Shown: positions 20,408 through 49,147 of the stretch, one piece after another
Layout: each line of letters starts with the position of its first letter
Numbering within the stretch: position 1 is the first letter of the stretch
Origin: Obrimoposthia wandeli
Taxonomy: Eukaryota
DNA length: 64,000 bases
Assembly (NCBI GenBank): GCA_977020255.1
Contig: CDROCS010005958.1
Location: forward strand, 1 to 64,000
Direction: 5' to 3'
Program-made: the position numbers and the translations under genes
The notes under the pieces: generated by a model
Seen by the model: only the letters and a program-made list of their open reading frames with translations
Databases searched by the model: none
Told to the model about the DNA's origin: nothing

Positions 20408-20408
20408 G

Positions 20409-24300: not shown

Positions 24301-24400
24301 CTTGCTAAGCCTAGCGCAGCGCAGCTTGTTTTGTTAGCTATTAGATAGAACAAGGTTTCATTTATATTAACGTTTAGAAGTAGTTCCCTTTGAGGTTTAT

Positions 24401-25084: not shown

Positions 25085-25089
25085 AAAAT

Positions 25090-26292: not shown

Positions 26293-26304
26293 GGTTTATT
26301 CGCG

Positions 26305-27318: not shown

Positions 27319-27540
27319 ACTTAATGCTACCTTGCATAGCTAAAAGAGGGTTGGCTATTATAAACGTAAGATATATGACTAAACAGTGAAGAATGATAAA
27401 TAAACTAAATCGAGCAATATTCTAAAACAGTTGTCTGCTAATCAGTTTGCTTGCTATTATTCGTGCTCAAAGTGTTTAAGATCTCTCGCTGATTTATCAT
27501 TTGTTATTTAACTTAAGTTTACTAATAAAGTACTTTATTC

Positions 27541-29515: not shown

Positions 29516-30450
29516 AGGTTTGTCTCCTTTTGAGAGTGAACTAAATTGACAAAAATTTCTTCTAACGAGCTTTCACAAGAATTTAAATCTTTTACCTGTA
29601 AATTCGCTTTATTAAGCTCAACAAGTAAGTTTGCAATACCATTTTCTGGTTGTTGCATATCGTAGCTGTAGTGTATTTCCCAGCCGTCTTTTACCAATTG
29701 TAATTGATAGCTAGCTAGAGAGTCGGGTAAAGTATCGGTCGGTTGTTGTAACTGTATAATGAGTGTTTTTTGTCCAAGTTTATTCATTAATACCGATTTT
29801 TCTTCAACTAACACGATGCTACCCTTATTGATCACTCCAATGCGATCAGCCATTTCTTCAGCCTCTTCAATGTAGTGGGTAGTCAGTAAAATAGTAACAC
29901 CGCTATCTCTTAACTCACGCACCATATTCCACATATCCCGGCGAAGCTCTACATCTACTCCGGCGGTTGGTTCATCTAAAAATAGGATAGTTGGTTCGTG
30001 TGATAAGGCCTTGGCTATCATTACTCTGCGTTTCATGCCGCCAGATAACTCGCGGATTTTAGCGTTTCTTTTATCCCAAAGCGAAAGCTGGCGTAAGATC
30101 TTTTCAATGTAGGCATCATTAGGTGGTTTGCCAAACAAGCCTCGGCTAAAGCGTACGGTTGAAAAAACACTCTCAAAGGCATCGGTCGTTAATTCTTGCG
30201 GCACTAAGCCTATCTTACTACGCGCTTGGCGGTAATCCTTAATAATATCGCAGCCATCCGCCACGACGGTACCGCCAGTGGCTGTGACAATGCCGCAAAT
30301 GATACTAATAAGCGTGGTTTTTCCAGCACCGTTAGGACCTAATAAAGCAAAAATTTCACCTCGCTTAATTTTTAGGTTTACATTGCTCAAAGCGCTAAAG
30401 CCCGAGCTATAGGTTTTACTTAGTTCACTAATATTGATGATAGAGGGCAC
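29512..30450 (-). CDS. ABC transporter ATP-binding protein (YadG-like)
   Basis: [25 protein letters not shown] and TTHYIEEAE. Confidence 0.92.
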
Positions 30451-30649
30451 AAAAACTCCTTTTGTACAAAGAAACCTAACGAGAGTAGGTCTATATTTGT
30501 CTATTAGAAATACTGATCTAGTTATTTTAAGTGATCATTTTTATCAACCAAGAACCCCGCTGCAAGCTATCTTACCGAGGCTAGACTTCATTTTGCGAAG
30601 CGGATTATGTAAATTTCTTTATAATAGGTTGGTTGCCCAGATTACCCTT

Positions 30650-30676
30650 AATGAACTAGGCTACGCTTAATTCATC
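30650..30676 (-). repeat. REP-like 27-bp palindrome, copy 6 (reverse orientation)
   Basis: Reverse complement reads GATGAATTAAGC-GTA-GCCTAGTTCATT. Confidence 0.7.
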
Positions 30677-30848
30677 TCTATTAAACAACATAAATCACAT
30701 AGGCTTGCGGATACATACTAGGTTAAAATTCACAGAGAGTTCGCAGTGAATAGATCGAGATAAAGGCTAAATTGAAATATAATCTGATATTCAAGATGAT
30801 GACAATAACAGATATCTGATGAGCTGTTTAAAAATCAGCATAAATTAA

Positions 30849-32213
30849 ATGAAAAACTTGGAAAAACTTATGAACAATAATTCTTTTAATCACCAATCTC
30901 TCAATAACTGGCAGCAAAGTCATCCTCTACTGCAACAAATGAGTCAAAAAAAAGCGGTGTTTTGGGTTAACGATAAATACCAAGAGCAAGTTGAAAAACC
31001 ATCACTTAGTTTGTCTGATATTGAAGATGCCAGTGAAAGGCTGCAGCGATTTGCTGCGTATATGATCAAAGTGTTCCCTGAGACACAGGCGAGTAAAGGC
31101 ATTATAGAGTCACCGTTGAAACCAATTAATGCAATGCATAATGTGTTGGCAGATATTTACGATGTCGTATTGAGCGGCGCATTATTTTTGAAATGCGATA
31201 GCCATTTACCTATATCAGGGTCGGTAAAAGCAAGAGGGGGCATCTATGAAATTATTAAACATGCTGAAACAATTGCGATGCAAGCAGGCTTACTAAATGA
31301 AACCGATGATTATGCAATAATTGATTCAAGCGCTTTTAAAGCCTTGTTTGCCAAACACAGCGTGGTCGTTGGATCCACTGGTAATTTAGGTTTAAGTATT
31401 GGCATTATGAGTGCGCAACTCGGGTTTAAGGTCACTGTTCATATGTCGGCAGATGCACGTGCTTGGAAGAAGCAGTTATTACGTAGTAAAGGTGTAATTG
31501 TTATTGAATACGATGAGGATTATTCCAAAGCGGTAGAGCAAGGCAGATTAGAAGCGCAAAACACCGCCAACTGTCATTTTGTTGATGATGAAAATTCTCA
31601 AGACTTATTTTTAGGCTATGCCGTTGCAGCGCTGCGCCTACAACAGCAATTAAAAGAGCAGAGCATTACAGTGGATGCGCAACATCCACTGTTTGTTTAT
31701 TTACCCTGTGGTGTTGGTGGTGCTCCTGGAGGTATTGGCTTTGGTTTGAAACAAGTGTTTGGTGAGCACGTACATTGCTTTTTTGCTGAACCAACAGCCG
31801 CACCTTGTATGTTGTTGGGTATGTATAGCGGATTACACGATGCGATATGTGTTCAAGATATTGGCGTAGACGGCGCTACTTGCGCCGATGGTTTGGCAGT
31901 AGGACGCCCTTCTGCATTTGTCGGCCGTTTTATGCAAACATTGCTCAGTGGTATTTACACCATAACAGATGATGACATGTATAAATTACTTGCGCTGATG
32001 AAAGATAACGAAGGTATTGAATTAGAACCCTCTGCATTAGCAGGGGTAGTGGGTATTCAAAAAATCCAGACACAAGGGAGTGGGTATATTGACAAGCATA
32101 GCCTAGGATCTGTGATGAAAAATGCAACGCACATTGCCTGGGCCACTGGTGGAAATATGGTACCTGAACAAGAGCGGGAGCAGTATTACAATATCGGTAA
32201 AGCTTTGCTTTAG
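30849..32213 (+). CDS. dsdA: D-serine ammonia-lyase
   Basis: [18 protein letters not shown] (PLP Lys), [38 protein letters not shown] and WATGG. Confidence 0.93.
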
Positions 32214-32453
32214 AAGTGTTATTTTAAGATAAGTATCATAAAAATAGCCGCTACATTAAACACGCTGCGCAGCGTCATAGCTGCGCATTGTTGTTAAATT
32301 AAGCTTTTTGTTGCTCTGAATTATCACCGCAGTTCGATTTAAGAATATTGATCATTTTATAGAGTGGGACCTACCCACTTTACACGGCCTACAATCACAA
32401 ATAATCTGCACCACGTAAGAGAAAATATCTAGCTCATTTAGACTTAGAGTCGT

Positions 32454-33137
32454 TTATAAAGCTTTGCCACCGACTTTACCTTCAGCCCAACTGGCAAAGC
32501 GTAGTACTGGATAACAATAAACAAAGTAGAGCGCTGCTATAAGGCCGTAGATAAACATGGTATCACCAGGCATACGTAAAATAGCCGTTTCACCCTGACG
32601 CGTTAGCTCAGAAATACCGATAACTGATAATACTGCCGTACTTTTAATAACGATTACATAAACACTCGCCATTGGTGGTACTGTCAACTTTAACGCTTGA
32701 GGTACAACAACATAAAACAATGCTTGAGCTTTACTCATACCACATGAGCGCGCGGCTTCTTCTTGTCCTTCAGGCACTGCATAAATAGCAGATGCAACGA
32801 TCGCCGTTACATAACTGGCAGTGTACAGTGTGAGCGAAATAACAGCTGCTGTGTAGCTGTCAAATTCTAGTGCGGAAATACCCGTTGAAGGCAGTACAAA
32901 ATAAATCAAGTACAGCTGTACTAAATAAGGTGTCCCTCTAAAAACATGTAAATAGCTATCTATACAGATTCGCAGCACTTTAGTGTCTAATGTTTTTAAA
33001 ATGCCGAGCATCGCTCCAAGTAAACTACCGCAAACAATTGCTACGATAGACACTTCAAAAGTACTTTGTAGGCCCGCCAGCAAAAAAGGTGACAAGCTGT
33101 CTATTATTTGCCATTTGGCACTTAACCATTCTAACAT
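32454..33137 (-). CDS. Polar amino acid ABC transporter permease
   Basis: FRGTPYLVQLY and the EAA loop VPEGQEEAARSCGMS. Confidence 0.9.
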   Translation of the reverse strand: MLEWLSAKWQIIDSLSPFLLAGLQSTFEVSIVAIVCGSLLGAMLGILKTLDTKVLRICIDSYLHVFRGTPYLVQLYLIYFVLPSTGISALEFDSYTAAVISLTLYTASYVTAIVASAIYAVPEGQEEAARSCGMSKAQALFYVVVPQALKLTVPPMASVYVIVIKSTAVLSVIGISELTRQGETAILRMPGDTMFIYGLIAALYFVYCYPVLRFASWAEGKVGGKAL

Positions 33138-33146
33138 TTTAGCCCC

Positions 33147-33857
33147 CTAGTTCGTGCTTTCGCCGCCTAATTTACGTTGAATAAACCCAGATGCAATCAG
33201 CATCATGAGATAAATAAGTAAATAGCAAAACGCAGTCGTTAAATAACTTTCAGTCGCTATAACTGTTTCTGAAAACATTTGTAAACCTGCACCCATTAAC
33301 TCAAATACCGCAATAATACTGAGCAACGAAGTATCTTTTACTAATACCACTGTCTGCCCTAACAATGGTGAAATAACTTTGGCAATAGCTTGTGGCAAAA
33401 TAATGTAATACATCGTCTGAAATTTGCTCATACCGACAGCCATCGCACCTTCTCTCTGTTTATTAGAGATAGATAAAATTCCCGTGCGGATTATTTCTGC
33501 CATATAAGGCGTTGTATGGATAGTTAAAGCAATGATTCCGGTTTCGGTTTCATCAAAAAAATTACCGATTAAACTCGGTAAGCCGTAATAAATTAAATAA
33601 ATTTGGATTAGCAGCGGTGTGGCGCGAATAAACTGTATATAGGCTGCAGCAGTACGCCAAATAATCGATACAGATGACATGCGCATCAAAGCGATAAAGA
33701 TGCCAAAAAATAGTGACAACGCGAGACAGATAAGAGAGATCCAAAGCGTTGCTATGATACCATTGAAGAATACATCAGCGTATTCACCAACGATTCGGTA
33801 GTTAAAATAGTCGAGTAGCCAAGACATAGGCGGCCTCAAAAAACCGGTAGCAAGCAT
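33147..33857 (-). CDS. Polar amino acid ABC transporter permease
   Basis: IRATPLLIQIY, AEIIRTGI and VKDTSL. Confidence 0.9.
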   Translation of the reverse strand: MLATGFLRPPMSWLLDYFNYRIVGEYADVFFNGIIATLWISLICLALSLFFGIFIALMRMSSVSIIWRTAAAYIQFIRATPLLIQIYLIYYGLPSLIGNFFDETETGIIALTIHTTPYMAEIIRTGILSISNKQREGAMAVGMSKFQTMYYIILPQAIAKVISPLLGQTVVLVKDTSLLSIIAVFELMGAGLQMFSETVIATESYLTTAFCYLLIYLMMLIASGFIQRKLGGESTN

Positions 33858-33951
33858 GATTTACGATGCAATGTTCAATGTTTGTAGCGGTAGAAAAAGA
33901 GAATAACTGGGGCGCCTAACACGACCCAGCGAGAATTTGAACTCAGTATAT

Positions 33952-34746
33952 TTACTTGTGATCAACTTCCCAATCTGTACTGTTCCACCAGTAATCAAGC
34001 ATTTTTTGCTTGCTTCCATCATGCTCAATCAACTGCATGTAGTTATTAAGCGCTAATAACAAGTGCATAGAGTCAGGGCGTACAGCAAAACCTAGTGGCT
34101 CTTTACGCATGAATCCTACAACTGTTAGCTCTGGGTACTGTTTAGTATAAGTCGCTAAGCTAGCACGATCAGAAATACCTGCATCAATACGACCACCTAG
34201 AACAGCTTGAACTGTCTGAGGAGTACCACCAGCATATTCTTTAAGCTTAGCATTTGGTAGTAATTCACGTGCAAGACCTGCGTAGCTTGACGCTTGAGTC
34301 GCACCTAAAGTGTACTGCTTGTCGTTTAGCAAGTTCCACTTAGTGAAGCCTTTGTCTTTTTTAGCGAACATTACATTCTCAGCAAAGAACGCAGGGTCTG
34401 TGAACAACACTTGCATATGACGCTTTGCTGTCGGTGTCATATCTGCAGCAATAAAATCAACCTTTCCCGATTTAAGTGCAGGGATTAATCCTTTCCAATC
34501 ATAATCTTTAACTTCAAGCTCTACGCCCATGTCATCGGCAAATTTCTGTGCCAAATCAATCGCAAGGCCGGTACGCTTACCATTCTTGTCGATAAAGCTA
34601 GTAGGTGGTCCTTGAGTTTGAACCGCAATGCTCATTTTCCCGGTTTTAACGATTTTTTCCATCGTTGTTTCAGCGCTGACTGTTGTTACAGCAAAAGCTG
34701 CGACCCAAGTCGCTGCTACTAAAAGCGTTTTTTTGAAGTTGAACAT
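33952..34746 (-). CDS. Polar amino acid ABC transporter substrate-binding protein (SBP family 3)
   Basis: Signal peptide; WKGLIPALKSGKVDFI and MTPTAKR (conserved Arg for the alpha-carboxylate). Confidence 0.9.
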   Translation of the reverse strand: MFNFKKTLLVAATWVAAFAVTTVSAETTMEKIVKTGKMSIAVQTQGPPTSFIDKNGKRTGLAIDLAQKFADDMGVELEVKDYDWKGLIPALKSGKVDFIAADMTPTAKRHMQVLFTDPAFFAENVMFAKKDKGFTKWNLLNDKQYTLGATQASSYAGLARELLPNAKLKEYAGGTPQTVQAVLGGRIDAGISDRASLATYTKQYPELTVVGFMRKEPLGFAVRPDSMHLLLALNNYMQLIEHDGSKQKMLDYWWNSTDWEVDHK

Positions 34747-34800
34747 TAATATTTCCCCATTATTATGCTTAGTTGATTTTATATTCTGTTGGTGTTTTTT

Positions 34801-35574
34801 CTAAAGAATTTGCTGTAAGAACTTCTGGGCTCGTTCGGTTTTAGGGTTGTCAAAAAACTCTGCAGGATCACCCTCTTCAACGATTGCTCCCGCATCCATA
34901 AAGATGACCCGATCCGCTACTTCTCGGGCAAAGCCCATTTCATGAGTAACAACAGCCATCGTCATACCATCTTTAGCCAGTTGCTTCATGAGATCTAATA
35001 CCCCATTGACTGTTTCAGGGTCTAAGGCAGAAGTTGCTTCATCGAACAGCATCATTTTAGGTTTCATCGCCAATGCTCTAGCAATCGCAACACGTTGTTG
35101 CTGACCACCTGATAGTTGGCGCGGGTAATTGCTCTCACGATCGGGAATGCCCACTTTTTGTAGTAATTCACGAGCGCCTTCTTCCGCTTCAGCAAGTCCT
35201 CTTTTAAGAACAACTCGCTGTGGCAATACAATATTTTCCAAACAAGTTTTATGCTCAAACAGATTGAAGTGTTGGAAAACCATCCCCACTTCAGTACGTA
35301 GCGCATTCATATCGGTCTTTTTATCTGCTAGATTGACACCATCCAGTATAATACTACCTTCATCAATGCTCTCTAAGCCGTTCAGTGTGCGCAATAAAGT
35401 ACTCTTACCAGAACCACTAGGGCCGATAATAACGACTACTTCTCCGGGATATATCTGGTTGGAAACATTGTCTAGCGCCAGTACACTTGTTTTGCCTTTA
35501 TCCACGCTAAAACGACGCGATACGCCGTTAATTTTTACGATAGGTTCTGGAGATTTCACTAAACTTTTCCTCAA
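34801..35574 (-). CDS. Polar amino acid ABC transporter ATP-binding protein
   Basis: [31 protein letters not shown] and [10 protein letters not shown]. Confidence 0.93.
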
Positions 35575-35981
35575 CTAAACTTATTCAAAATAAAACTACT
35601 TAAAATATGGCGATGCTCAATCAGCGACTGCATAGCAAACGACAAAGCATTTAACTCCAATTATTAAAGTTGGCAGCAGACTCATCTTTAACAATATATT
35701 TTCAATATGACTGCAAATAGTAACTTATGATCTTCATGAACAGGGTGTGCTGAGATCTGATGTTCGCATTAGATGTAACGTTATTACGCAAGCTGACAGC
35801 CCTCTTTAGTTTGTAGGGCCTATACTTTTAAATCGATAAATTAATGTACATCACTAAATAAGCACTAACAATTAACAATATGCTAATAAAGTGAGCAATG
35901 TATAGCAATGTGTAATAAATTGCTAACTTTATGCTAGGCTTGGGACTTTATTCAAAAATCCACAGATAATTATTAGGTATA

Positions 35982-36413
35982 TTGGCGATGGAACTTGAAC
36001 AACGAGATAAAAAATTGATAGCCCTTTTATTACAAAATGGACGAGAGTCTGTTGTTTCCCTCAGTAAGAAACTTGGCGTTTCCAGAGCAACTGTTCAAAA
36101 TCGTATTGATACACTTCAGCGTCGTAAAATCATCAAAGGCTTTACTGTATTATTCAATGATGAATATGAAAAGCGGCTATTACGTGTGCTAATGTCAGTA
36201 AATCTGCGAGCGGGTACCTCACGGGCCGTCATTAAAAATTTACGCACACGCCCTCAAGTGACTAAAATTCTCTCTGTCAGTGGTGTATACGACTTAGTAA
36301 TAGAGTTAACCGTAGAAACGACTGTAGAGCTAGACATACAAGTCGATGATATCCGCGAAATTGATGGTATCGAAAACACCATTTCTTCGGTAATACTTGC
36401 TGATTACTACTGA
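35982..36413 (+). CDS. Lrp/AsnC family regulator
   Basis: DKKLIALLLQNGRESVVSLSKKLGVSRATVQNRI HTH and VSGVYDL. Confidence 0.92.
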   Translation: MAMELEQRDKKLIALLLQNGRESVVSLSKKLGVSRATVQNRIDTLQRRKIIKGFTVLFNDEYEKRLLRVLMSVNLRAGTSRAVIKNLRTRPQVTKILSVSGVYDLVIELTVETTVELDIQVDDIREIDGIENTISSVILADYY

Positions 36414-36422
36414 TTTAATAGA

Positions 36423-36449
36423 GACGAATTAGGCGTAGCCTAAATCATC
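36423..36449 (+). repeat. REP-like 27-bp palindrome, copy 7 (start of a ~105-bp shared module)
   Basis: GACGAATTAGGC-GTA-GCCTAAATCATC, 9 bp after the Lrp stop. Confidence 0.8.
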
Positions 36450-36804
36450 AAGGGCAAACTCTCTGCATCTGAAGGCGTGAATTTATTAGCACAAAAAGAC
36501 CCTAGAAATACCCCGTTTCACGTAGCGAGGGGCTTTATTATCATTTATACGGCTGGGTTGCTTAACTTCACCAGTCCATTGCGGTCAATATTCTACAAGT
36601 AATTATTTCAAATATTACATTTTGAAATAATTACTTAGCAAAATGTTATTAAATAGTTACAGTTCTAACTTATTGCTCGCTTGTTTGTACATATTCTACT
36701 CGTTACAATTTTCCAATCATATTACTGCCTCTGCGATAGGTTAGCCCATCCTATATGAAGCACTAATTGTCCTCTCATGATAAGAGATTATTGGATTTAT
36801 ATAG

Positions 36805-38058
36805 ATGAAATACAACTTTACAGCCATCCTTAAACAAGCCCTTAATGGCCAGCGTGGTTGGCCACGTGCCTGGCGCAACGCGACACCTAAGCCGCACTAC
36901 GACGCGATCATTATCGGTGGGGGTGGTCACGGCTTAGCCGCCGCTTATTATCTCGCAAAAAATCACGGTATTACCAATGTAGCCGTATTAGAAAAAGGCT
37001 GGATAGGTGGCGGAAATGCAGGGCGCAACACAACCATCGTGCGCTCTAACTACGAGCTACAAAGCAATGCGCGTTTTTATGAACACTCATTAAAGCTTTG
37101 GGAAAACCTGAGTGAAGAGCTCAACTTCAATACCATGTTTTCTCAGCGCGGCGCGATGATCGTGGCACAAAATGACGGCAGTGTTGATTACTTACTCAAA
37201 CGCGGTAATGCGATGCGCTTGCAAGGTATCGATGCACAGTGGTTATCACCGGACGAAGTTCGCAGTGAGCTGCGCGGCGTGTACAGCAACGAAAATGCAC
37301 GTCTTCCTATTTACGGCGGCCTAATGCAACGCCGTGGCGGAACCGCGCGGCACGATGCATTGATTTGGGGTTATGCCCGTGCAGCCAGTGCTTTAGGTGT
37401 GGACATCATTGAAAACTGCGAAGTTACCGACTTTGTTATTCAAGGCGAAAAAGTACTCGGAGTACAAACCAATCAAGGCAAGATTCTAGGGGGCGCTACG
37501 GCACTCAGTGTCGCTGGTCACTCAGGACACCTCGCAGCGAAAGCAGGTATTCGCCTGCCACTAGAAAGCCATTTGCTGCAAGCGTTCGTCACAGAACCTG
37601 TTAAACCTTTAATAGATACCGTGGCGGTTTTTAGTGGTCTGGAACTCTATATTAGTCAGTCGGATAAAGGCGGGCTGGTGTTCGGTGGCGAGCTTGATGG
37701 CTACAACTCTTACTCTCAACGCGGCTCTTTTTCACGCAGCCGCGACATCATGAAAGCAGCTGCAACTTATTTTCCAATGATCAGCCGTTTAAAGGTATTG
37801 CGTCAATGGGCCGGAGTAGTTGATATGAGTATGGATGGCAGCCCTATTATGCATTGCGGCCCGCTGGATAATTTATATCTCAATGCAGGTTGGTGTTATG
37901 GCGGTTTTAAAGGTACACCCGCCGCTGGGTGGTGCTTAGCTCACAGTATCGCAGAAAACAAATCCCATCCGTTAAGTGAGGGCTTTAGTTTAGACCGCTT
38001 CAAAAGTGGCCGTACTATCGATGAACCAGGTACTGGCCCTGTACCAAATGCTCACTAA
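36805..38058 (+). CDS. soxB: Heterotetrameric sarcosine oxidase-like beta subunit
   Basis: IIGGGGHGLAAAYYLAKNHGITNVAVLEKGWIGGGNAGRNTTIVRSNY, GTARHD and GWCYGGFKGTP. Confidence 0.92.
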   Translation: MKYNFTAILKQALNGQRGWPRAWRNATPKPHYDAIIIGGGGHGLAAAYYLAKNHGITNVAVLEKGWIGGGNAGRNTTIVRSNYELQSNARFYEHSLKLWENLSEELNFNTMFSQRGAMIVAQNDGSVDYLLKRGNAMRLQGIDAQWLSPDEVRSELRGVYSNENARLPIYGGLMQRRGGTARHDALIWGYARAASALGVDIIENCEVTDFVIQGEKVLGVQTNQGKILGGATALSVAGHSGHLAAKAGIRLPLESHLLQAFVTEPVKPLIDTVAVFSGLELYISQSDKGGLVFGGELDGYNSYSQRGSFSRSRDIMKAAATYFPMISRLKVLRQWAGVVDMSMDGSPIMHCGPLDNLYLNAGWCYGGFKGTPAAGWCLAHSIAENKSHPLSEGFSLDRFKSGRTIDEPGTGPVPNAH

Positions 38059-38079
38059 TGACTACCTAGAGAAATTACT

Positions 38080-38373
38080 ATGAACCGAATTCCCTGTCCT
38101 CATTGCGGCGAGCGTGATTTAGAAGAATTTTACTACGGTGGCGACGCCACTCTGCAGCGTCCATCAATGGATGATGAATCACTTGAACGCTGGCACGATT
38201 TTGTCTATTTACGCGATAACCCACGCGGCCCACACACTGAACTTTGGTATCACTCAAGTGGCTGTAGACGCTGGTTTAAACTAGTACGAGATACGCTGAC
38301 TCATCAAATATCTGCCATTGATCAAAACAATACCTCGACAGTTAGCGCCAAGTTAGGAAACGAGCATGTTTAA
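38080..38373 (+). CDS. soxD: Sarcosine oxidase-like delta subunit
   Basis: CPHCG...WYHSSGCRRW zinc ligands. Confidence 0.92.
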   Translation: MNRIPCPHCGERDLEEFYYGGDATLQRPSMDDESLERWHDFVYLRDNPRGPHTELWYHSSGCRRWFKLVRDTLTHQISAIDQNNTSTVSAKLGNEHV

Positions 38374-41300
38374 ATCTAAAATCGATAACTTGCGCCTCTC
38401 TACCGGTGGTGCCATTGACAGAACAGAAGTATTGGAGTTTAGCTTTAATGGCCAAACGCTGAGCGGCTTTCAAGGTGACACTGTTGCTTCAGCGCTGGCC
38501 GCCAACGGTATTAAATTACTGGCGCGCAGCTTTAAGTACCATCGCCCTCGAGGTCTTTATAGTGCGGGGCCAGAGGAGCCGAATGCATTATTGAGTATAG
38601 AAATTGGTGGCCGTACTGAAGTGAATGCTCGCACTACAATGGTCGCGCTACAGCAAGGTATGCGTTTGCGTTCTCAAAATTGCAGCCCTTGTGTTAACTT
38701 TGATTTTTTGGCTATCAACGACAAACTATCTGCTCTTCTTAGCGCCGGTTTTTACTACAAAACCTTCATTTGGCCAGGATTAAAAGGTTGGATGTTTTAT
38801 GAAAATATTATTCGTAAAGCAGCAGGCATGGGAAATACTGGATTACAGGCTGATAATGCAAAATATGAGCACATCCATCTGCACTGCGATTTACTGATTG
38901 TTGGGGCGGGTATTGCTGGAGTTAATGCAGCACTTGCAGCAGCAAATGGTGGTCTCGATGTGATTTTAGTCGAGCAACATCAAGCAATTGGTGGGCGTCT
39001 TTGCGAGCACCCACAACATGTCATTTGGTTACACCGCGCTGAGCAAGAAATTAGCGACCATAAAAATGTTCGCTTAATGACACAAACGACGGCCTTTGGC
39101 GCGTACGATAATCAAATCTATACTTTATTAGCACGCAATACCGCATCACCCATTATATTAGAGCAACTATTTGAAGTTAATGCCAAGCACTGCATCACTA
39201 CTACCGGTGCTATTGAACGACCATTAGTGTTTGCCAATAATGACTTACCCGGTATCCAGCTGGCCGGTGCTGCACAAACTTATCTACACCGTTATGCCAC
39301 ATTACCTGGGCGCGAGATTGTTATTTTTTGTAACAATAATAGTGCCTATCAAGTCGCAGCAGATTTACTAGATGCTGGCGCAAAGGTCACTGCATTGGTT
39401 GAGATACGTGCGCAAGAAGAGGTCAAATTGGATGCCCCACTTCGAAATAAAATACAAAGCTCTGCCATTCAGTTACATTACAATACGGCTGTTAGCTGTG
39501 CCAAAGGTAATAAAAGAGTACGTAGCGTAGCACTCAAGCCTACTGATTCTTTTACTACGAGGTCTTCAAGTACTCAGCCAATGATACTGCAATGCGATAC
39601 TTTGCTCGTATCTGGTGGCTGGTCACCCACAGCACATTTACACAGCCAAAGTGGCGGTAAACTGAAATACGATGCAGCCGTCGCTGCGCTTATCCCTATC
39701 CAAAGTAGTAGCGAAATATTCAGTGTCGGTGCAGCTGCAGGCGATTTTAGTGTGTCTAATACGGCAAAAAGTGCATGGAAATTAGGCTTGAATTTAGCCG
39801 AAAGTAATGATGCACAACCCTCTTGGCTAATGATTAATCATAGCGAAAATGCCTATCAAATCAGCCCTGTGTGGTCCGTTGCAGGTCGTGGAAAAGCATT
39901 CGTCGATTTACAACACGATGTTAGCACTGCCGATATCGCTCTGGCGGCACGCGAAGGTTATCAATCAGTTGAGCATTTAAAGCGCTACACCACGCTGGGT
40001 ATGGGGACCGATCAAGGAAAGCTAAGTAACGTCAACGCACTTGCACTGATGGCAGAACAGCTAGGACAAAGCATAGATCAAACCGGAACTACCCGTTTTC
40101 GACCTCCTTATACACCGGTTACTGTCGGTGCCTGGGGAGGAAATGAAACGGGTCATCATCTTACTCCAAGGCGTCGCACGCCAATGCAACAATGGCACGT
40201 AGATAATGGCGGTTATTTTAATATCAGTGGTCCCTGGCAGCGCGCCACCGACTATCGCCGCCAAGGTGAATCAAAAAAAGCGGCAGTGATTCGCGAAGTA
40301 ACACATGTGAGAGCGCAAGCAGGTTTAGTGGATGTATCTACCTTAGGTAAAATACGCTTGTGTGGCCCTGATGCATTGCAGTTATTGAATCTCGTTTATG
40401 TGAACAGCTTTGATACACTTAACATTGCCCGTGTCCGCTACGGTATTATGCTACGCGAAGATGGGTTAGTGTTTGATGATGGCACCGTGATACGCCTCGC
40501 TACTGATGACTATTTAATTACCACCACCACCGCTAAAGCACCCTTAGTGATGCGCCATTTAGATAGGCTCACCCAGGTTGATTGGCCTGAACTCGAAGTT
40601 GCTTGTACCAGTGTGACAGATCAATATGCGGCGATGGCTATCGCTGGGCCTAAAAGCCGTGAAATTCTACAAGGGTGCATTGCCGATATTGATTTTAGTG
40701 ACGAGACTCTGCCTTTTATGGGCTACGCCTGTGGGCATTTAGGGCAAGTGCCTATCGAAATTTGCCGCATCAGTTTCAGCGGTGAATTAGCCTATGAACT
40801 ATATACGGGCGCAGACTATGGCAGCTTGTGCTGGCAGGCATTACTTGATCATGATACAGCGCTGCAAGTTTACGGTTTAGATGCGCTCGATACACTACGC
40901 ATTGAGAAAGGCCATCTCACTGGGGCGGAGATAGATGGCAGACGTAGCTTAGATGATATTGGTATGTCAGCGATGATGCGTGGCACAAAGTCTTTTATTG
41001 GTAGTGCACTAGCCAAGCGTTTTGAGTTACACAAAAGCGAAGAGCGGTTACAAATTGTCGGCCTTCGTTCAGTCGATCCTGAGCAGGCACTTGAAGAGGG
41101 AATGCATTTAATCGAAGAGGCTATCGATCTTGAAAAACACGATTCCCATGGGCAGATCAGCTCCGTTTGTTACAGCCCAATGGCTCACTCTGAAATAGCG
41201 CTGGCGCAATTACGTAATGGTCGCGCACGTGTGTGTGAAAAACTATGGGCAGTGTCGCCACTGCGTAACATGCGCGTAGAAGTAATGGTTGTTGACAGTT

Positions 41301-42025
41301 GTTTTTACGATCCGAAAAATATAGTCCCTCGAGCATCGCTTACACCAACTGATCAATTACAGCGCCCGAACCATGCGATGTCATTGGCAGCGGTGCGCAA
41401 CGGCCCATTGCTCAATAGTGACAAAAAAATGCACAGTGCAATTGATAGTATTGTTCATTCACAGCTCAACTTGTATAGCGTTGCCAGCTGGCCAAATGCC
41501 AACAATATGCGTATTGATACTTTAGCTAAATTGCTCGGTTTTCACGTCGATGATTATCCAAAACCTGGCAGCAGTATAAAGATAGCTGGCGTAGATATAT
41601 TTGCCATCGGCCCTTATCATTGCTGGTTACAAGTCGATAATGAACAAAGCTCTCTGTGTATTAATGACTTAGCCAAGCAGCTATCTAGTTCAATAGCCAG
41701 TGTCGTTGACATAAGCCACAGCTACACAAAAGTTAGTTTGCGAGGCAAAGGGCTGCGTGCTCTACTGAGCCGTGCAATAGACATTGATTTGCGCACGAGC
41801 GAGTTTAAAAAACAACAGTTTGCGCTAACACGTTTGCTTGCTGTGCAAGCTTTAGTGCACTGCCTTGATGTAGGTGATGTTGATCATAAAGTAGCTACAG
41901 ATACTTCCAATAACGAACAATTCGATATTCTTTTTAACCGCGCTTTTGCCTTAGATGCTTGGCAGCATTTATCAGAAATAAGTCATCATTTAAGCGTCAC
42001 TGAACAGCAAGGAAAACTCTCATAA
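38366..42025 (+). CDS. soxA: Sarcosine oxidase-like alpha subunit fused to a gamma-subunit-like domain
   Basis: RSFKYHRPRG, GFYYKTF, EHLKRYTTLGMGTDQGK, DVSTLGKI, RISFSGELAYE and LRIEKGH. The usual SoxA end FYDP is followed in frame by about 230 aa resembling SoxG (VVDISHSYTKVSLRG...LSRAIDIDLR...RAFA). Confidence 0.88.
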   Translation: MFKSKIDNLRLSTGGAIDRTEVLEFSFNGQTLSGFQGDTVASALAANGIKLLARSFKYHRPRGLYSAGPEEPNALLSIEIGGRTEVNARTTMVALQQGMRLRSQNCSPCVNFDFLAINDKLSALLSAGFYYKTFIWPGLKGWMFYENIIRKAAGMGNTGLQADNAKYEHIHLHCDLLIVGAGIAGVNAALAAANGGLDVILVEQHQAIGGRLCEHPQHVIWLHRAEQEISDHKNVRLMTQTTAFGAYDNQIYTLLARNTASPIILEQLFEVNAKHCITTTGAIERPLVFANNDLPGIQLAGAAQTYLHRYATLPGREIVIFCNNNSAYQVAADLLDAGAKVTALVEIRAQEEVKLDAPLRNKIQSSAIQLHYNTAVSCAKGNKRVRSVALKPTDSFTTRSSSTQPMILQCDTLLVSGGWSPTAHLHSQSGGKLKYDAAVAALIPIQSSSEIFSVGAAAGDFSVSNTAKSAWKLGLNLAESNDAQPSWLMINHSENAYQISPVWSVAGRGKAFVDLQHDVSTADIALAAREGYQSVEHLKRYTTLGMGTDQGKLSNVNALALMAEQLGQSIDQTGTTRFRPPYTPVTVGAWGGNETGHHLTPRRRTPMQQWHVDNGGYFNISGPWQRATDYRRQGESKKAAVIREVTHVRAQAGLVDVSTLGKIRLCGPDALQLLNLVYVNSFDTLNIARVRYGIMLREDGLVFDDGTVIRLATDDYLITTTTAKAPLVMRHLDRLTQVDWPELEVACTSVTDQYAAMAIAGPKSREILQGCIADIDFSDETLPFMGYACGHLGQVPIEICRISFSGELAYELYTGADYGSLCWQALLDHDTALQVYGLDALDTLRIEKGHLTGAEIDGRRSLDDIGMSAMMRGTKSFIGSALAKRFELHKSEERLQIVGLRSVDPEQALEEGMHLIEEAIDLEKHDSHGQISSVCYSPMAHSEIALAQLRNGRARVCEKLWAVSPLRNMRVEVMVVDSCFYDPKNIVPRASLTPTDQLQRPNHAMSLAAVRNGPLLNSDKKMHSAIDSIVHSQLNLYSVASWPNANNMRIDTLAKLLGFHVDDYPKPGSSIKIAGVDIFAIGPYHCWLQVDNEQSSLCINDLAKQLSSSIASVVDISHSYTKVSLRGKGLRALLSRAIDIDLRTSEFKKQQFALTRLLAVQALVHCLDVGDVDHKVATDTSNNEQFDILFNRAFALDAWQHLSEISHHLSVTEQQGKLS

Positions 42026-42927
42026 TGCATACTCAAAGCTGGCAAGAAATGGTCCCTCAAGGACGTCCCTTTATCAAAATGCAAGGCTTACACAACCACT
42101 TTGTTATAGTAGATGCTCGGGCTATTGCCTACCGACCAAGCAAAGCCGAAATTGTGCAAGTTTGCGATGTTAAAACAGGCGTAGGTGGCGATCAGTTATT
42201 AGTGATTGAGCTACCAACAGAGCAGGGGAAATTGGCAGGCGCGGTTGCTTTTATGCGTATCATCAACGTTGATGGTGCAGATGCTGAAGCCTGTGGTAAT
42301 GCTTCACGATGTATCGCTTGGTTGCTCATGGAAGAACAAGGTTGTGATGAACTCTCTTTTGAAACATTAGCCGGTGTACTGGCTTGCAAACGTACGGGGG
42401 AGTTAGAAGTCAGTGTTGAAATGGGCCGTATCTCAATGCAAGCGGCTGATATACCTTTAGCACCAGATGCTGATTCTCTCAACTTAAATTTAGAGAGTGG
42501 TCCGTTGAAAAACCCTATCGCGCTTAACATCGGTAATCCACATGCCGTGTGTTTCGTCGATGATTTAGATGCAGTCGATATGTTGCAATGGGCACCAGCG
42601 ATACAATGTGATGCAGTTTTTCCAGAAAAAGCCAATGTAGGGGTAGTTCAAATGCTCAGCCCGGAGCATTTACGCCTATCTGTTTATGAGCGACCGGGAA
42701 TTCTGACCACGGCTTGTGGTAGTGGTGCTTGCGTAAGTGTAGTGGCTGCTCGGGTTAAAGGCTTAACCGATGCGCGTAGGGTAAAAGTAGAAATGCCTGC
42801 AGGCAGTGTCATTGTTGAAATATTAGAAGATAATAGTGCGATTATGACAGGCTCGGTCAGCTGGTGTTATCAGGGGTACCTGCCTTTATTTGACAACAGT
42901 GAGTTAGGAAAACAGAGAATTGTTTAA
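42025..42927 (+). CDS. dapF: Diaminopimelate epimerase family protein
   Basis: KMQGLHNHF, GGDQLL, INVDG..ACGN, IGNPH, ANVG, VYER and TACGSGAC; both catalytic Cys retained. Confidence 0.82.
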   Translation: MHTQSWQEMVPQGRPFIKMQGLHNHFVIVDARAIAYRPSKAEIVQVCDVKTGVGGDQLLVIELPTEQGKLAGAVAFMRIINVDGADAEACGNASRCIAWLLMEEQGCDELSFETLAGVLACKRTGELEVSVEMGRISMQAADIPLAPDADSLNLNLESGPLKNPIALNIGNPHAVCFVDDLDAVDMLQWAPAIQCDAVFPEKANVGVVQMLSPEHLRLSVYERPGILTTACGSGACVSVVAARVKGLTDARRVKVEMPAGSVIVEILEDNSAIMTGSVSWCYQGYLPLFDNSELGKQRIV

Positions 42928-43127
42928 GAACATTGATCAGTTTGTAGAGTGCTAAGGCTTAGGCTTAGGCTTAGGATAGAGCTTGTGTGGATCTTTCTTG
43001 ATTGGTCCTTTATTAATCCTAAGCTGCGCTAATTTTAGGGTACAGATAATCATGTGCCCTAAAATTATTGACTTGATTAGTGTTTACGATCAGAGCAAGT
43101 CAGAAATGAAAAACGAGAAAAGTTTGG

Positions 43128-43355
43128 TTACTTTACAGTAGACTTTTTTAAAGCCGCACATATCTTATGCACAATAGGCGCTATGACTACGACACTTGGA
43201 AATGCGACTAAAAATGCCACGCCCCATGCAGTAAGCCACTTAATAAATAAACCATCAATAAGACCCAGATTAAGTAAAGTCAGGAAAAACGACATAATCC
43301 CCGACATAAACAGTGCCATAAAAAACGGGAAGTAAAGCCTTTCTAATTTGCGCAT
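43128..43355 (-). CDS. DUF2798-like small membrane protein
   Basis: MALFMSGIMSFFLT...WLTAWGVAFLVAFP pattern. Confidence 0.72.
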   Translation of the reverse strand: MRKLERLYFPFFMALFMSGIMSFFLTLLNLGLIDGLFIKWLTAWGVAFLVAFPSVVVIAPIVHKICAALKKSTVK

Positions 43356-43559
43356 AGCTCTTTTGCCTAAATATATAATGGGTACGGTTTAGCTATTGTA
43401 ACATCAGTTAAAAAATCGAAGTAATAATACTCAGTTAGATTTATAAACTTAATGAAATATTTATGTTGCTTTTTTGAGAACAATAAACCAAAACCGCTCT
43501 ATATATAAATATTTGATAAGTCATTATTCTGTAAAAAATATAGCGCAATGGAGTAATGA

Positions 43560-44453
43560 ATGGACTTAAATCAGCAGTATCAAAAGATAGGCATTATTGG
43601 ATTGGGCAATATGGGTAATGCAATGGCGCGCACACTGATAAGGGAAGGATTTTTAGTTGTCGGTACTGACCTTGGTGAAGTGCAAAAAAAGACTGCTAAA
43701 GCGATAGGCGTTGAAGTCGTTGATGATATTAAAGCACTGTGTTCACAAACTAAAAATATAATTTTATCACTACCAATGGCTAAACATGTCGTCAGTGTGA
43801 TTAAAGGTGAAGAACAAGGTTTAGGAGGGATTATTGAATATGCCCAACCTGACACGTTGGTGATAGATACATCAACGTCAGAGCCAAGTATTACCAAGCA
43901 ACTAGCGGTGCTGTTGGCAAATAAGGGGCACCAACTTTTAGATTGTCCTGTTAGTGGTGGCCCTGCAGGGGCAGCCAATGGCTCGATGGTTGTCGTTGCA
44001 GGTGGGGAGAGCAGCGCGTTAGAGCGTGCTCAGCCTTGGCTAGATGCTTTAAGTAGTAAGGTAGTGCATTTAGGTGCGTCGGGTAATGGTCATACAGCAA
44101 AGCTGATTAATAATTTATTGTGCGCTGCGCATTTAGTCACCACAGCAGAGGCGATTGCATTAGGAAAAAAAGCAGGTCTTGATCCTGCAGCATTGATTGA
44201 GGGGCTGAATGCAGGCTCTGGTCGCAGTGCTATAAGTGAAGTGAATTTCCCCCGTTGGATATTAAACGAGCGTTTTGACTCAGGCTTTAGCATGCAACTC
44301 ATGCGCAAAGATGTGCGTTTAGCAAAGCAATTAATAAAGGACATGCAAATGCAGTTATCAATGAGCGAAGCGGTTGCTGATATATGGGCTGCAAGCGAGG
44401 ATTGTATCGCTGATGCAGATGATTTTAATAGCATTGTTAAAAGCCACATTTAA
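43560..44453 (+). CDS. NAD(P)-dependent beta-hydroxyacid dehydrogenase (3-hydroxyisobutyrate dehydrogenase family)
   Basis: IGLGNMG, DCPVSGG and GHTAKLINN (catalytic Lys). Confidence 0.9.
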   Translation: MDLNQQYQKIGIIGLGNMGNAMARTLIREGFLVVGTDLGEVQKKTAKAIGVEVVDDIKALCSQTKNIILSLPMAKHVVSVIKGEEQGLGGIIEYAQPDTLVIDTSTSEPSITKQLAVLLANKGHQLLDCPVSGGPAGAANGSMVVVAGGESSALERAQPWLDALSSKVVHLGASGNGHTAKLINNLLCAAHLVTTAEAIALGKKAGLDPAALIEGLNAGSGRSAISEVNFPRWILNERFDSGFSMQLMRKDVRLAKQLIKDMQMQLSMSEAVADIWAASEDCIADADDFNSIVKSHI

Positions 44454-44476
44454 ACGCTTACTGAGGCAGGAAGATT

Positions 44477-46027
44477 ATGTTCACTGTAGAAAATAATGGC
44501 GAAGCGCAGGTAGAGGCGTTACTAAAAGAGTTATTAGCAATTGAAAAACTCGATAACGAAAGTTTTGGGAGTTGGGTTAATGGTGAATTAGTAGGGGGTA
44601 CAGGTGAGAGTATAGCGCTGGTAAATGCAGCCACTGGACAGGCGTTTATGCAGTATAAAGATGCAGGCAAAAGTGTGGTTGATGATGCAGCACAAGTGGC
44701 AGTGATAGCGCAGCGTAAATGGTGGGCGATGACGGCGAGTGCCAGAGGGAAGTTAATGTATGCTTGTGCTGAAAAAGTAAGATTGGCGGCGCCCTCTTTA
44801 GCGAAATTAGAATCTATATCTGCCGGCAAACCGATACGAGATTGTCGGGTTGAAATAGCCAAAGTGGCAGAGATGTTTGAATACTATGCAGGCTGGTGCG
44901 ATAAAATGACAGGCCAAGTTATTCCTGTACCTAGCAGTCATCTTAATTACACCAGGCATGAGCCTTTTGGTGTAGTCGTGCAAATAACCCCCTGGAACGC
45001 TCCTGTTTTTACTGCGGGTTGGCAAATTGCCCCTGCGATATGTGCAGGTAATGCGGTACTGATAAAACCGTCTGAGTTAACACCTTTAAGTACTACGATT
45101 TTAGCTAAACTCATTGAACAAGCAGGTATTCCAAAAGGTTTGGTGAATGTCATTAATGGTTACGGTCACTCTACAGGTTGCGCAGCGATTGCCAACCGAG
45201 CCTGTAAAAAAGTAGTGTTTGTAGGCTCTCCTAAAACAGGCAGTGTAATAGCAAGTGCAGCTGCGCAGCGGGTTATCCCCTGTGTGCTTGAGTTAGGTGG
45301 TAAATCTGCCAATATTATATTTGAAGATGCGGATCTTGATCGTGCGGTAGTAGGTGCTCAAGCGGCAATATTTGCAGCAGCTGGGCAAAGCTGTGTTTCA
45401 GGCTCAAGGTTATTAGTAGACAAAAAAGTATATGCGCAAGTAGTGGACAAATTAGCATCTGCAACACGTAAAATTGAGCCAAACCTGCCTTGGCTAGAGA
45501 CAACGATGGTTGGCCCTGTCAATAATGTAAATCAGCTTAATCACATAAAAGCACTAGTAACAGATGGTGTGGCACAAGGCGCCACCATTGCAGCCGGTGG
45601 GGATAGCGGTTTAATAAAAGGAGGGGAAGGCGGCTATTTTTATCAGCCAACGGTACTGGCAGATGTAAATAACCAGATGAATATTGCGCAAGAGGAAATC
45701 TTTGGCCCTGTTGTTTCTGTGATCCCTTTTGATGATGAAGCGCAAGCTATTGAGATAGCTAATGATAGCCGTTTTGGTTTAGCAGGTGCTGTATGGACGG
45801 CTGATGTTGGGCGTGCACACCGAATGGCTGCCCAGGTAAATGCTGGCACTTTTTGGGTGAATAGCTATAAGGCAATTAACGTTATGTCGCCTTTTGGTGG
45901 TTTCGGTGAAAGTGGCTATGGTCGTTCAAGCGGTTATGAAGGACTTTTAGAATATACCCAAACCAAGAGTGTCTGGATTGAAACCGCTGCCAACGCTGCC
46001 ATCCAATTTGGGTACAGTGTTGAGTGA
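44477..46027 (+). CDS. Aldehyde dehydrogenase
   Basis: ITPWN, KPSE, LELGGKSA, GQSCVSG (catalytic Cys), EEIFGPV and PFGGFGESGYGR. Confidence 0.93.
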   Translation: MFTVENNGEAQVEALLKELLAIEKLDNESFGSWVNGELVGGTGESIALVNAATGQAFMQYKDAGKSVVDDAAQVAVIAQRKWWAMTASARGKLMYACAEKVRLAAPSLAKLESISAGKPIRDCRVEIAKVAEMFEYYAGWCDKMTGQVIPVPSSHLNYTRHEPFGVVVQITPWNAPVFTAGWQIAPAICAGNAVLIKPSELTPLSTTILAKLIEQAGIPKGLVNVINGYGHSTGCAAIANRACKKVVFVGSPKTGSVIASAAAQRVIPCVLELGGKSANIIFEDADLDRAVVGAQAAIFAAAGQSCVSGSRLLVDKKVYAQVVDKLASATRKIEPNLPWLETTMVGPVNNVNQLNHIKALVTDGVAQGATIAAGGDSGLIKGGEGGYFYQPTVLADVNNQMNIAQEEIFGPVVSVIPFDDEAQAIEIANDSRFGLAGAVWTADVGRAHRMAAQVNAGTFWVNSYKAINVMSPFGGFGESGYGRSSGYEGLLEYTQTKSVWIETAANAAIQFGYSVE

Positions 46028-46080
46028 AGTAAGAGTTAAAAGAAACAAGTTGCAGCACTTGAATACAGGTCTGATATAGA

Positions 46081-46887
46081 GTGATAAACAACATGGCAGA
46101 TTATGAGAAAACTATTTATAAGAAAACAATAGATATTCCCAATTTGTGGGAGACAATCCAAGGCGAGATAAAAAAGGAAGCTAAAAGCTGCCCACTGTTA
46201 ACCGATTTTTTGCATCGTAATATATTGCAGCACGCTAGTTTTGAAGTAGCACTTTGTTATGTATTAGCAGAAAAACTAGCTGAAAACTCAAGCAAAATTA
46301 ACGAATGGTATCACTACTTACTTGCTGTTTTAAATGAGCAGCAGGCTCTAGTAAATGATCAGTTATCGATCAGCGAATGCGCATTACGCGATTTACTTTG
46401 CCAATTACAAAGCAATGCCAGTATTAAAGATCACTATAGCCCGTTACTCTTTTTTGCGGGCTATCAAGCATTGCAGTGTTATCGCTTTTCTCATTATTGT
46501 TGGCACCATCATCAACGGGCAATGGCCAGCTTTATACAAGCGAAAAGTGTCGAGTTATTTGGCGTAGATATACATCCTGCAGCGCGTATTGGAACGGGGA
46601 TATTTATGGATCACAGTGTGGCAGTGGTCATAGGAGAAACCGCCGTCGTTGAAAATAATGTCACTATTTTCCAAAGTGTGACATTAGGTGGTACCGGTAA
46701 GGGAAGTGGAGATCGGCATCCCAAAGTTCGCCAAGGTGCCTTTATTGGCTGTGGGGCAGTCATTTTTGGCAATATAGAAATTGGTAAAAATGCAAAGGTG
46801 GCCGGGGGAGCAGTTGTAGTTAAAAGCGTAGCAGCAAATACAACTGTTTTGGGCACAGTGGCAAAAATCAAATCAATCAATTCTTAA
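46081..46887 (+). CDS. cysE: Serine O-acetyltransferase-like protein lacking the usual C-terminal tail
   Basis: SATase N-domain plus DIHPAARIG, DH and VTLGGTGK...DRHPK; ends shortly after the hexapeptide domain. Confidence 0.72.
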   Translation: MINNMADYEKTIYKKTIDIPNLWETIQGEIKKEAKSCPLLTDFLHRNILQHASFEVALCYVLAEKLAENSSKINEWYHYLLAVLNEQQALVNDQLSISECALRDLLCQLQSNASIKDHYSPLLFFAGYQALQCYRFSHYCWHHHQRAMASFIQAKSVELFGVDIHPAARIGTGIFMDHSVAVVIGETAVVENNVTIFQSVTLGGTGKGSGDRHPKVRQGAFIGCGAVIFGNIEIGKNAKVAGGAVVVKSVAANTTVLGTVAKIKSINS

Positions 46888-46900
46888 TATAGGTGGAACA

Positions 46901-47800: not shown

Positions 47801-47900
47801 CATTTTTTTATAGAGACAAACTCACTCGTTTTTAGCTATAACCAACTAATACCCAAATCAGCTTAGCCTCTGCCTGAACTGCGTATATAAAGGATTAACA

Positions 47901-49079: not shown

Positions 49080-49147
49080 GCAATGCGATTGATTGATACG
49101 TTTTTATGCTTTGTTTCAAGTATGTTTGAGCTTAAGTAAACCGGTGT

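Follow-up and report, generated by a model that had tools for sequence, protein, structure and literature searches.

A conserved locus combining an amino-acid importer, an accessory DapF paralogue and a sarcosine oxidase-like enzyme suggests the use of diaminopimelate-type amino acids by host-associated bacteria

Why would a bacterium keep a second diaminopimelate (DAP) epimerase gene behind a sarcosine oxidase-like enzyme and opposite an amino-acid importer? The question is raised by positions 32454-42927 of a stretch of 64,000 nucleotides, called the window below, which is contig CDROCS010005958.1 (positions 1 to 64,000) of the Obrimoposthia wandeli assembly GCA_977020255.1. The source assembly (G000; 1.35 Gb, 6912 contigs, at least 22 DapF genes) is a host assembly with many bacterial contigs, and the window is one of them, from a marine bacterium that lives in or on the animal, with a GC content of about 40% and zero N. 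The original prediction, made from the letters of this DNA, proposed that the locus imports, epimerises and oxidatively cleaves a single secondary-amine amino acid. We propose a different assembly of the same parts: a core that appears to be a module for the uptake and epimerisation of DAP, and a Sox-type oxidase recruited to it in one lineage. Families were assigned by profile scans with Pfam and TIGR/NCBIfam models and their curated cut-offs; these scans covered the open reading frames (ORFs) of the window except those at 18911-21218 and 55892-61736, and with the ORF list they bear out the genes and families first read in the locus. The closest relatives of the locus were obtained by word search and by exact-protein look-ups.

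The core is best seen where the oxidase is missing. In Alphaproteobacteria, dapF genes of the sister clade are directly followed by the orthologous ATP-binding cassette (ABC) importer, often with overlapping genes, and none of the seven loci of this kind (L009, L012, L013, L016, L024, L026 and L028) contains sox genes. In six of the seven the identity to the window importer is 70-73% for the ATPase, 59-64% for the binding protein and 65-71% for the permeases, and L028 is more distant (69%, 46% and 49-62%); taken singly, permease 2 is 62-71% identical across these modules, and permease 1 is 65-70% identical in six and 49% in L028. The genomic surroundings of the modules are unrelated between genomes, and all five GTDB genomes that hold one also hold a second, canonical DapF. 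The module is scarce: with E-value cut-offs set to capture the DapF subfamily, it was not found in 400 gammaproteobacterial and 400 alphaproteobacterial species genomes, evenly sampled, save for two centre genomes.

The second line of evidence comes from a lineage that does carry the oxidase. At positions 7680-8948 of its locus L192, and also in L094, L193 and L194, the importer operon is extended by a gene for a true diaminopimelate decarboxylase, LysA (TIGR01048, 482 bits against a cut-off of 298), which follows the permeases at a distance of 98 nt and in their orientation. This lysA looks like an added copy, because its product is only 46-50% identical to the canonical gammaproteobacterial LysAs. 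Since DapF and the importer occur without sox in Alphaproteobacteria, and since lysA was added in one of the sox-linked lineages, the core of the locus reads as a module that takes up DAP and epimerises it. Where an importer goes together with the two final DAP-handling enzymes, its cargo would be DAP isomers or a compound converted into them. Importer and DapF paralogue very probably act jointly on diamino acids of the DAP type, the product being meso-DAP for the cell wall, or lysine. The same two observations indicate a flow from DAP to lysine and not a cleavage, and they do not uphold the proposal that epimerase and oxidase act on a single imported secondary amine.

The DapF paralogue itself (42025..42927, forward strand; PF01678; TIGR00652, 215.3 bits, cut-off 114.65) can be aligned from end to end with the solved DapFs, at an identity of only 35-40%. 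Its catalytic residues C90 and C231 do not vary within the subfamily and correspond in the alignment to Cys75 and Cys224 of Anabaena DapF, which stand at the heads of the two central helices. In the Anabaena enzyme the proximal and distal contacts to DAP are made by N13, N66, G76, N77, N164, N197, E215, R216, G225 and T226 (PMC12039745). The counterparts in the window protein are N24, N81, G91, N92, N171, N204, E222, R223, G232 and S233, all kept apart from the change of Thr to Ser at the last position. The catalytic pair and the DAP-binding motifs that had been noticed in the letters are thus in place, and the DAP-like ligand named among the early candidates would suit a pocket in which every contact is retained. 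The subfamily also has changes of its own, such as GNDF to xNHF and VWERG to VYERP. By its residues and its score, the paralogue is predicted to be a genuine DAP epimerase. In two gammaproteobacterial metagenome-assembled genomes (MAGs), probably Desulfobacterales, this DapF-like subfamily is apparently the sole DapF, so that its chemistry is likely to be ordinary DAP epimerisation.

The mixture of a host and many bacteria in the source assembly makes the number of dapF copies per bacterium unreadable from it. The copy status was settled instead by phylogeny and by the nearest genome carrying the locus, the Oceanospirillaceae MAG GCA_036960485 (G011), and not by the hit count in the assembly. 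A maximum-likelihood tree built on 69 DapFs places the window copy within a starred clade, and both the canonical gammaproteobacterial DapFs of the source assembly and the canonical alphaproteobacterial ones lie outside it. The five sox-linked DapFs form one clade (97, starred), and its sister (95, starred) is made up of the alphaproteobacterial copies that precede an ABC importer. Of eight canonical gammaproteobacterial dapF loci in the assembly, seven have lysA directly upstream; the window dapF has no such neighbour, and lysA is absent from the whole window. The Oceanospirillaceae MAG has the DapF copy of the locus (213 bits) in addition to a canonical lysA-dapF pair (297 bits). The separate clade, the missing lysA neighbour and the presence of both copies in this MAG establish that the window dapF is an accessory copy outside the housekeeping lysA-dapF context, as had been supposed. 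By GC content and divergence, contig C6248 (lysA-dapF, L008) would be the likeliest home of the canonical pair of the window bacterium.

The importer is a polar amino-acid transporter (PAAT) set encoded on the reverse strand. It consists of permease 2 (32454..33137) and permease 1 (33147..33857), both of the polar amino-acid type with the HEQRo three-transmembrane signature (PF00528 and TIGR01726, the latter matched twice), one periplasmic substrate-binding protein of the SBP_bac_3 family (33952..34746; PF00497) and one ATPase (34801..35574; PF00005), which is GlnQ/EhuA/TcyN-like and stays under the equivalog cut-offs. The listed start of the ATPase ORF is TTG, and the real start may sit a few codons downstream. 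The best model for the permeases is the cystine permease, far below its cut-off. The binding protein has weak matches, also below the cut-offs, to the lysine/arginine/ornithine and cystine binding-protein models, and a weak one of 45 bits to nopaline-binding proteins; its nearest solved structures are AncCDT-1 and other binders of the arginine/lysine type, and a look-up in the ESM Atlas returned generic names only.

The whole block, in the order permease, permease, binding protein, ATPase and, divergently, Lrp, soxB, soxD, soxAG, dapF, recurs well beyond the window, and the synteny search suggested at the outset returned it each time with its Lrp gene. It is complete and in the same order on a second bacterial contig of the source assembly (C6375, positions 62000-78801; L180 and L181), with a GC content of 46-48% and 69-94% amino-acid identity. 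This is a separate contig of higher GC and its proteins differ to that extent, so two different host-associated bacteria carry the block. It is also found in the Oceanospirillaceae MAG, split over two contigs (L176 and C251; 73-94% amino-acid identity), in a lineage from four JGI metagenomes (L094 and L192-L194; 57-83%) and on an SRR29092993 contig. Among these sox-linked loci the orthologues are 82-89% identical for permease 2, 80-86% for permease 1 and 78-88% for the binding protein. The left flank is dsdA in the window, a chemoreceptor gene in the MAG (L176) and lysA in the JGI lineage (L192), and the right flank is a HIBADH-like gene with an aldehyde dehydrogenase gene, an M48 peptidase gene, or MerR and TauE genes. 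As the flanks differ in every locus, the unit is exactly 32454-42927; a terminator-like hairpin (32266..32287) marks its left edge and separates the ABC operon from dsdA, which is transcribed towards it. The locus is accessory and has probably spread horizontally.

What, then, does the oxidase contribute? Its genes lie on the forward strand in the order first described, soxB (36805..38058), soxD (38080..38373), soxAG (38366..42025) and then dapF. The separate gamma gene left open by that description does not exist, since the alpha and gamma parts form one ORF of 1219 aa, in which Fer2_4, NAD/FAD-binding, A3 and GcvT folate domains are followed by a SoxG-like tail. The fusion is also present in independent assemblies, at 1229-1259 aa, which excludes an assembly error as its cause. 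The beta subunit, an FAD/FMN protein of the SoxB family, and the delta subunit (PF04267) score above their family cut-offs (TIGR01373, 617 against 529 bits; TIGR01374, 117.4 against 116.5 bits); the alpha part (1122 against 1164) and the gamma part (49 against 144) stay below theirs, the gamma-like TIGR01375 stretch being residues 1046-1162 of the fused protein. The word search with the fused protein gave only three close relatives (at least 57% identity), followed at 47% by ordinary, unfused SoxA. The overlaps already noticed were measured: soxD and soxA share 8 nt, and the soxAG stop and the dapF start share 1 nt (TAATG), with a Shine-Dalgarno-like AGGAAAA just 5' of them. To judge from this arrangement, dapF is translationally coupled to soxAG.

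The catalytic sites of the oxidase, which were mapped by sequence alignment combined with the literature on related enzymes, are partly conserved and partly rebuilt. SoxB matches the crystallised beta subunits with 453 bits and keeps the FMN-linked His (H183) and Lys369, which is the flavin-N5 lysine Lys358 of the beta subunit. In the alpha subunit GCV_T scores 195 bits and GCV_T_C is also present; the folate-site core of its GcvT domain is kept in FDD, GELAYE and LRIEKG, the Asp of FDD corresponding to Asp96 and the Glu of GELAYE to Glu195 of the Thermotoga T-protein. On the other hand, a comparison with 110 ordinary SoxB proteins, in which 188 columns reach a conservation of at least 93%, gives the clade of the locus 19 fixed differences at these columns. 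One of them replaces His280, found in 98% of the 110 ordinary proteins and in the crystallised enzymes, by Glu. This residue aligns with the His of the heterotetrameric sarcosine oxidase (TSOX) beta subunit (His269/270) and of the archaeal proline dehydrogenase beta subunit, and with position 244 of glycine oxidase; PDB 3IF9, with Ala at position 244, is presumably the H244A specificity mutant. Nearby, Gly278 and Val275 are smaller than the His and Met of the crystallised enzymes.

The Oceanospirillaceae MAG shows what an ordinary enzyme looks like beside this one. It has a second soxBDAG set adjoining a Rieske oxygenase and reductase pair of the glycine-betaine type, whose SoxB has His280, His278 and Met275 and is 49% identical to the SoxB of the locus. 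Because this ordinary, betaine-linked set exists besides, the oxidase of the locus is an additional paralogue, with an amine pocket that appears remodelled and a one-carbon (C1) transfer site that appears intact; the view that it is no ordinary sarcosine oxidase is borne out to this extent. A third soxB-like gene of the same MAG (C251:10494-11699, L213; 476 bits, below the cut-off) lies about 9 kb downstream of the DapF paralogue.

The companions expected of the known pathways are lacking. Domains of glyA (serine hydroxymethyltransferase, SHMT), purU, folD, gmaS and mgs are absent from the scanned window ORFs, as was read from the letters, and so are the gbcAB and dgc companions of glycine-betaine and sarcosine catabolism. 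The domains Gln-synt_C, GATase_2, GXGXG and Glu_synthase were found neither in the window scans nor in the related loci L094, L176 and L192. The nearest SoxB outside the clade that also has Glu280 is P0243, which is 67% identical. Its soxBDAG genes (L195:1-17500, GCA_021772915) stand among genes for a gamma-glutamyl transpeptidase, a beta-lactamase-fold protein, MlrC, an M55 D-aminopeptidase, a DAO-family enzyme, a TonB receptor and an MFS (major facilitator superfamily) transporter, a setting that fits the breakdown of D-amino-acid peptides or peptidoglycan peptides.

The model we propose combines DAP-type import, epimerisation and the folate-coupled demethylation of an N-methylated diamino acid; we give it a probability of roughly 0.45, and its ligands, reaction order and regulation are what we infer from these comparisons. 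The ABC importer, of a cationic amino-acid clade with cystine/DAP-like features, would take up DAP isomers and close relatives. The DapF paralogue would equilibrate LL- and meso-DAP, which would enter peptidoglycan or be decarboxylated to lysine, in one lineage by an extra lysA of its own in the importer operon. An Oceanospirillaceae-type lineage would have recruited the heterotetrameric Sox-family enzyme (beta, delta and fused alpha-gamma) in front of dapF. Most likely, this oxidase would remove the N-methyl group of an N-methylated diamino acid, entering by the same importer, as 5,10-methylene-tetrahydrofolate (methylene-THF), and would leave DAP or lysine. The Lrp-type regulator would control both divergent operons. 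Removal of an N-methyl group is favoured because the folate site is kept; a substrate larger than sarcosine and with a second ammonium is favoured by the new Glu and the enlarged pocket; and the fixation of sox before dapF, with lysA in a sister lineage, suggests that the oxidase product feeds the same route. The full sequence of events would be an undescribed route in which an N-methylated diamino acid of the DAP or lysine type, perhaps from the host, from algae or from degraded peptides, is imported and demethylated, its C1 unit saved as methylene-THF and the product epimerised to meso-DAP. We put this complete version forward as tentative, and it is clearly less likely than the joint action of importer and epimerase.

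Several points weigh against the model. We know of no natural N-methyl-DAP. The nearest solved relatives of the binding protein bind arginine or lysine, not DAP, and the alphaproteobacterial modules lack the oxidase, hence the latter may serve a different imported compound. The DapF subfamily is housekeeping in some lineages, and its presence alone implies no catabolism. The reading of residue 280 as an active-site position comes from sequence alignment and from the literature on MSOX (monomeric sarcosine oxidase) His269 and on glycine oxidase H244A. Finally, all sox-linked loci descend from one ancestor, and their common gene order counts as a single evolutionary event, long maintained; the long retention and the tight coupling argue for a link between sox and dapF, short of proof.

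That single event could also be explained by two unrelated functions under one regulator, a plain oxidase of sarcosine (or N-methylglutamate) having been inserted between Lrp and an older DapF-ABC salvage module and inherited with it as a unit. The scores of SoxB and SoxD above their cut-offs, the intact flavin and folate sites, the existence of the module without sox in Alphaproteobacteria and the monophyly of the sox-linked loci would all agree with this. Yet the Oceanospirillaceae MAG already has its ordinary betaine-linked soxBDAG with the normal His, the SoxB of the locus differs by Glu280 and by 18 further changes specific to its clade, both the fusion of alpha to gamma and the 1-nt overlap of soxAG and dapF have persisted across loci that are 57-94% identical, and the glyA, purU, folD, gmaS and mgs companions are lacking; we consider this explanation unlikely. 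A little less likely still is a lysine-supply regulon, in which the importer would bring in lysine or a derivative, the oxidase would demethylate N-epsilon-methyl-lysine or a similar compound, and dapF (with lysA) would boost the last lysine steps under a lysine-sensing Lrp. Such a regulon would account for a binding protein nearest to arginine/lysine binders, for an Lrp whose best match is the lysine-responsive LysM type and for the presence of DapF and LysA, the last two steps to lysine, and Glu280 could hold the alpha-ammonium of a diamino acid. It would leave a mobile lysine importer and a redundant biosynthetic epimerase without a clear advantage in genomes that already hold a canonical dapF, and the LysM-type match stays below its cut-off.

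Two further explanations appear improbable, and to a similar degree. In the original prediction, a single imported bis-amino acid with a secondary amine, or an opine, would be epimerised and then oxidatively cleaved; to its lysinoalanine, alanopine and strombine, octopine may be added. An ABC importer beside a SoxB/SoxA-like oxidase does recall the octopine and nopaline loci, the bacterium comes from an animal host assembly and the SoxB pocket is altered. However, the DapF pocket matches that of DAP epimerases at every residue, so that longer or iminodiacid substrates would fit poorly, the match to nopaline-binding proteins is weak and the link to lysA points to DAP. Moreover, a GcvT folate domain, which opine oxidases are not known to have, is retained in the alpha subunit together with its core residues; with this C1-transfer site kept, an N-methyl group, such as that of the N-methylated amino acid named among the early candidates, fits and a carboxyalkyl group does not. 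Lysinoalanine and the opines are argued against on these grounds, the unchanged DAP pocket and the kept folate site. The other explanation would have the Sox complex oxidise the D-centre of DAP, or piperidine-2,6-dicarboxylate, to tetrahydrodipicolinate and so feed or drain the DAP pathway, the folate domain being structural only. Relatives in the family do act as oxidases on primary amines, as glycine oxidase does, or on cyclic imino acids, as archaeal proline dehydrogenase does, and a sister Sox stands in an apparent peptidoglycan-peptide breakdown cluster; the conservation of the folate-site residues would be unexpected for an idle domain, and no heterotetrameric member bearing GcvT is known to act in this way. 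BMAA (beta-methylaminoalanine), pipecolate and teneraic acid were also weighed as substrates.

The regulation foreseen in our model would involve the Lrp/AsnC-family gene (35982..36413, forward strand; PF13404 and PF01037), which diverges from the ABC operon. The best NCBIfam match of its product, to the lysine-responsive LysM type, reaches 74 bits against a cut-off of 180. Its orthologues in the related loci are 75-87% identical, and an Lrp gene also adjoins the alphaproteobacterial modules L012 and L016. In the spacer between Lrp and soxB, the most conserved block across four relatives is TTGTTT-17 nt-TACAAT (36681..36709, forward strand), a sigma-70-like promoter by consensus match only, about 95 nt before soxB. 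About 45 nt 5' of it lies a perfect 16-nt inverted repeat with an 8-nt spacer (36597..36636), whose halves are AAGTAATTATTTCAAA and TTTGAAATAATTACTT. The right half (ACATTxTGAAATAA) is partly kept in C6375 and in the Oceanospirillaceae MAG, this half being the only one conserved, and the repeat is a candidate operator for the regulator. An Rfam search of positions 30000-45000 matched no family, including the lysine, glycine and THF riboswitches.

The composition of the locus is uneven. The C-rich codons that had been seen by eye across it are real in soxB, where the GC content at third codon positions (GC3) is 0.464 and the C content (C3) 0.297, and less strongly in soxAG (GC3 0.385), while GC3 averages 0.346 (sd 0.031) over the window; unlike these two genes, dapF and the genes of the importer are ordinary. 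The excess in the sox genes fits a later recruitment of sox into an older module, or strong codon selection, and is weak evidence either way.

Outside the unit, the window holds several gene groups of separate interest. On the left, dsdA (30849-32213), for a D-serine ammonia-lyase (684 bits), is transcribed towards the importer operon; in relatives it is not a conserved neighbour of the locus. Further left, positions 22621-28584 carry a lipid A remodelling cluster with an EptA-type phosphoethanolamine transferase, a response regulator/histidine kinase pair and an LpxR lipid A deacylase. On the right, positions 43560-50077 encode on one strand a HIBADH-like dehydrogenase, an aldehyde dehydrogenase, a CysE-like acetyltransferase, a Glyoxalase_3 protein, an M20 amidohydrolase, which is DoeB2/CpsA-like and not DapE, and a LysR regulator. 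This run, perhaps a small catabolic operon in its own right, does not accompany the locus elsewhere. The dsdA, HIBADH-like, aldehyde dehydrogenase, CysE-like and M20 amidohydrolase genes were dropped as parts of the locus, as they are not conserved in relatives.

Could the locus serve the recovery of cell wall amino acids in the host? The breakdown of bacterial cell walls, in animal hosts as elsewhere, sets free DAP and related compounds, and the presence of the block in two bacteria of one host assembly, against none in the 800 sampled species genomes, suggests a niche-specific nutrient. Our literature searches turned up no account of a sox-dapF or dapF-ABC locus, of DAP catabolism through genes of this kind, or of a dedicated bacterial module for the uptake and epimerisation of DAP. 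If our reading is right, the core would be the first dedicated DAP importer and epimerase module, and the demethylating enzyme would represent a new substrate class of heterotetrameric sarcosine oxidase. Paralogues of this enzyme are numerous in marine bacteria, mostly without a known substrate; in the present case the change of His to Glu in the pocket and the partners dapF, lysA and an importer of the cationic amino-acid type narrow the search for the substrate to a short list.

In comparison with known systems, the locus shares with the SoxBDAG enzymes of Corynebacterium sp. U-96 and S. maltophilia (1VRQ, 2GAG) the subunit set, order and domains, the FMN-His, Lys358 and the folate core. It differs from them in the fusion of alpha and gamma, in alpha and gamma scores below the cut-offs, in the change of His to Glu with smaller neighbouring residues, and in the lack, among the scanned window ORFs, of the usual glyA, purU and folD companions. 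The octopine and nopaline loci of Agrobacterium (occQMPJ/nocPTQM and ooxAB/noxAB) likewise pair a polar-amino-acid ABC importer with a SoxB/SoxA-related flavoenzyme on transferable DNA. Opine oxidases OoxAB and NoxAB have two subunits and no known GcvT folate domain, and the octopine and nopaline loci are not known to contain DapF; in contrast, the alpha subunit of the locus has a GcvT domain, delta and gamma parts are present, and the binding protein is only weakly NocT-like. For the importer, the cystine/diaminopimelate uptake of E. coli (FliY/TcyJ-YecSC), which Berger and Heppel reportedly described in 1972, offers a precedent for DAP uptake by an ABC system. It belongs to the same transporter family, and the cystine permease model is the best match of our permeases, although the scores of the locus are far below the equivalog cut-offs and the E. 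coli operon has neither epimerase nor oxidase. Finally, like the DapFs of H. influenzae, Anabaena and E. coli, the window copy is full length, with the Cys pair, all the DAP contacts and a score above the equivalog cut-off; it differs from them in belonging to a separate clade, in having no lysA neighbour, and in being a second copy, with an importer and an oxidase as its partners.

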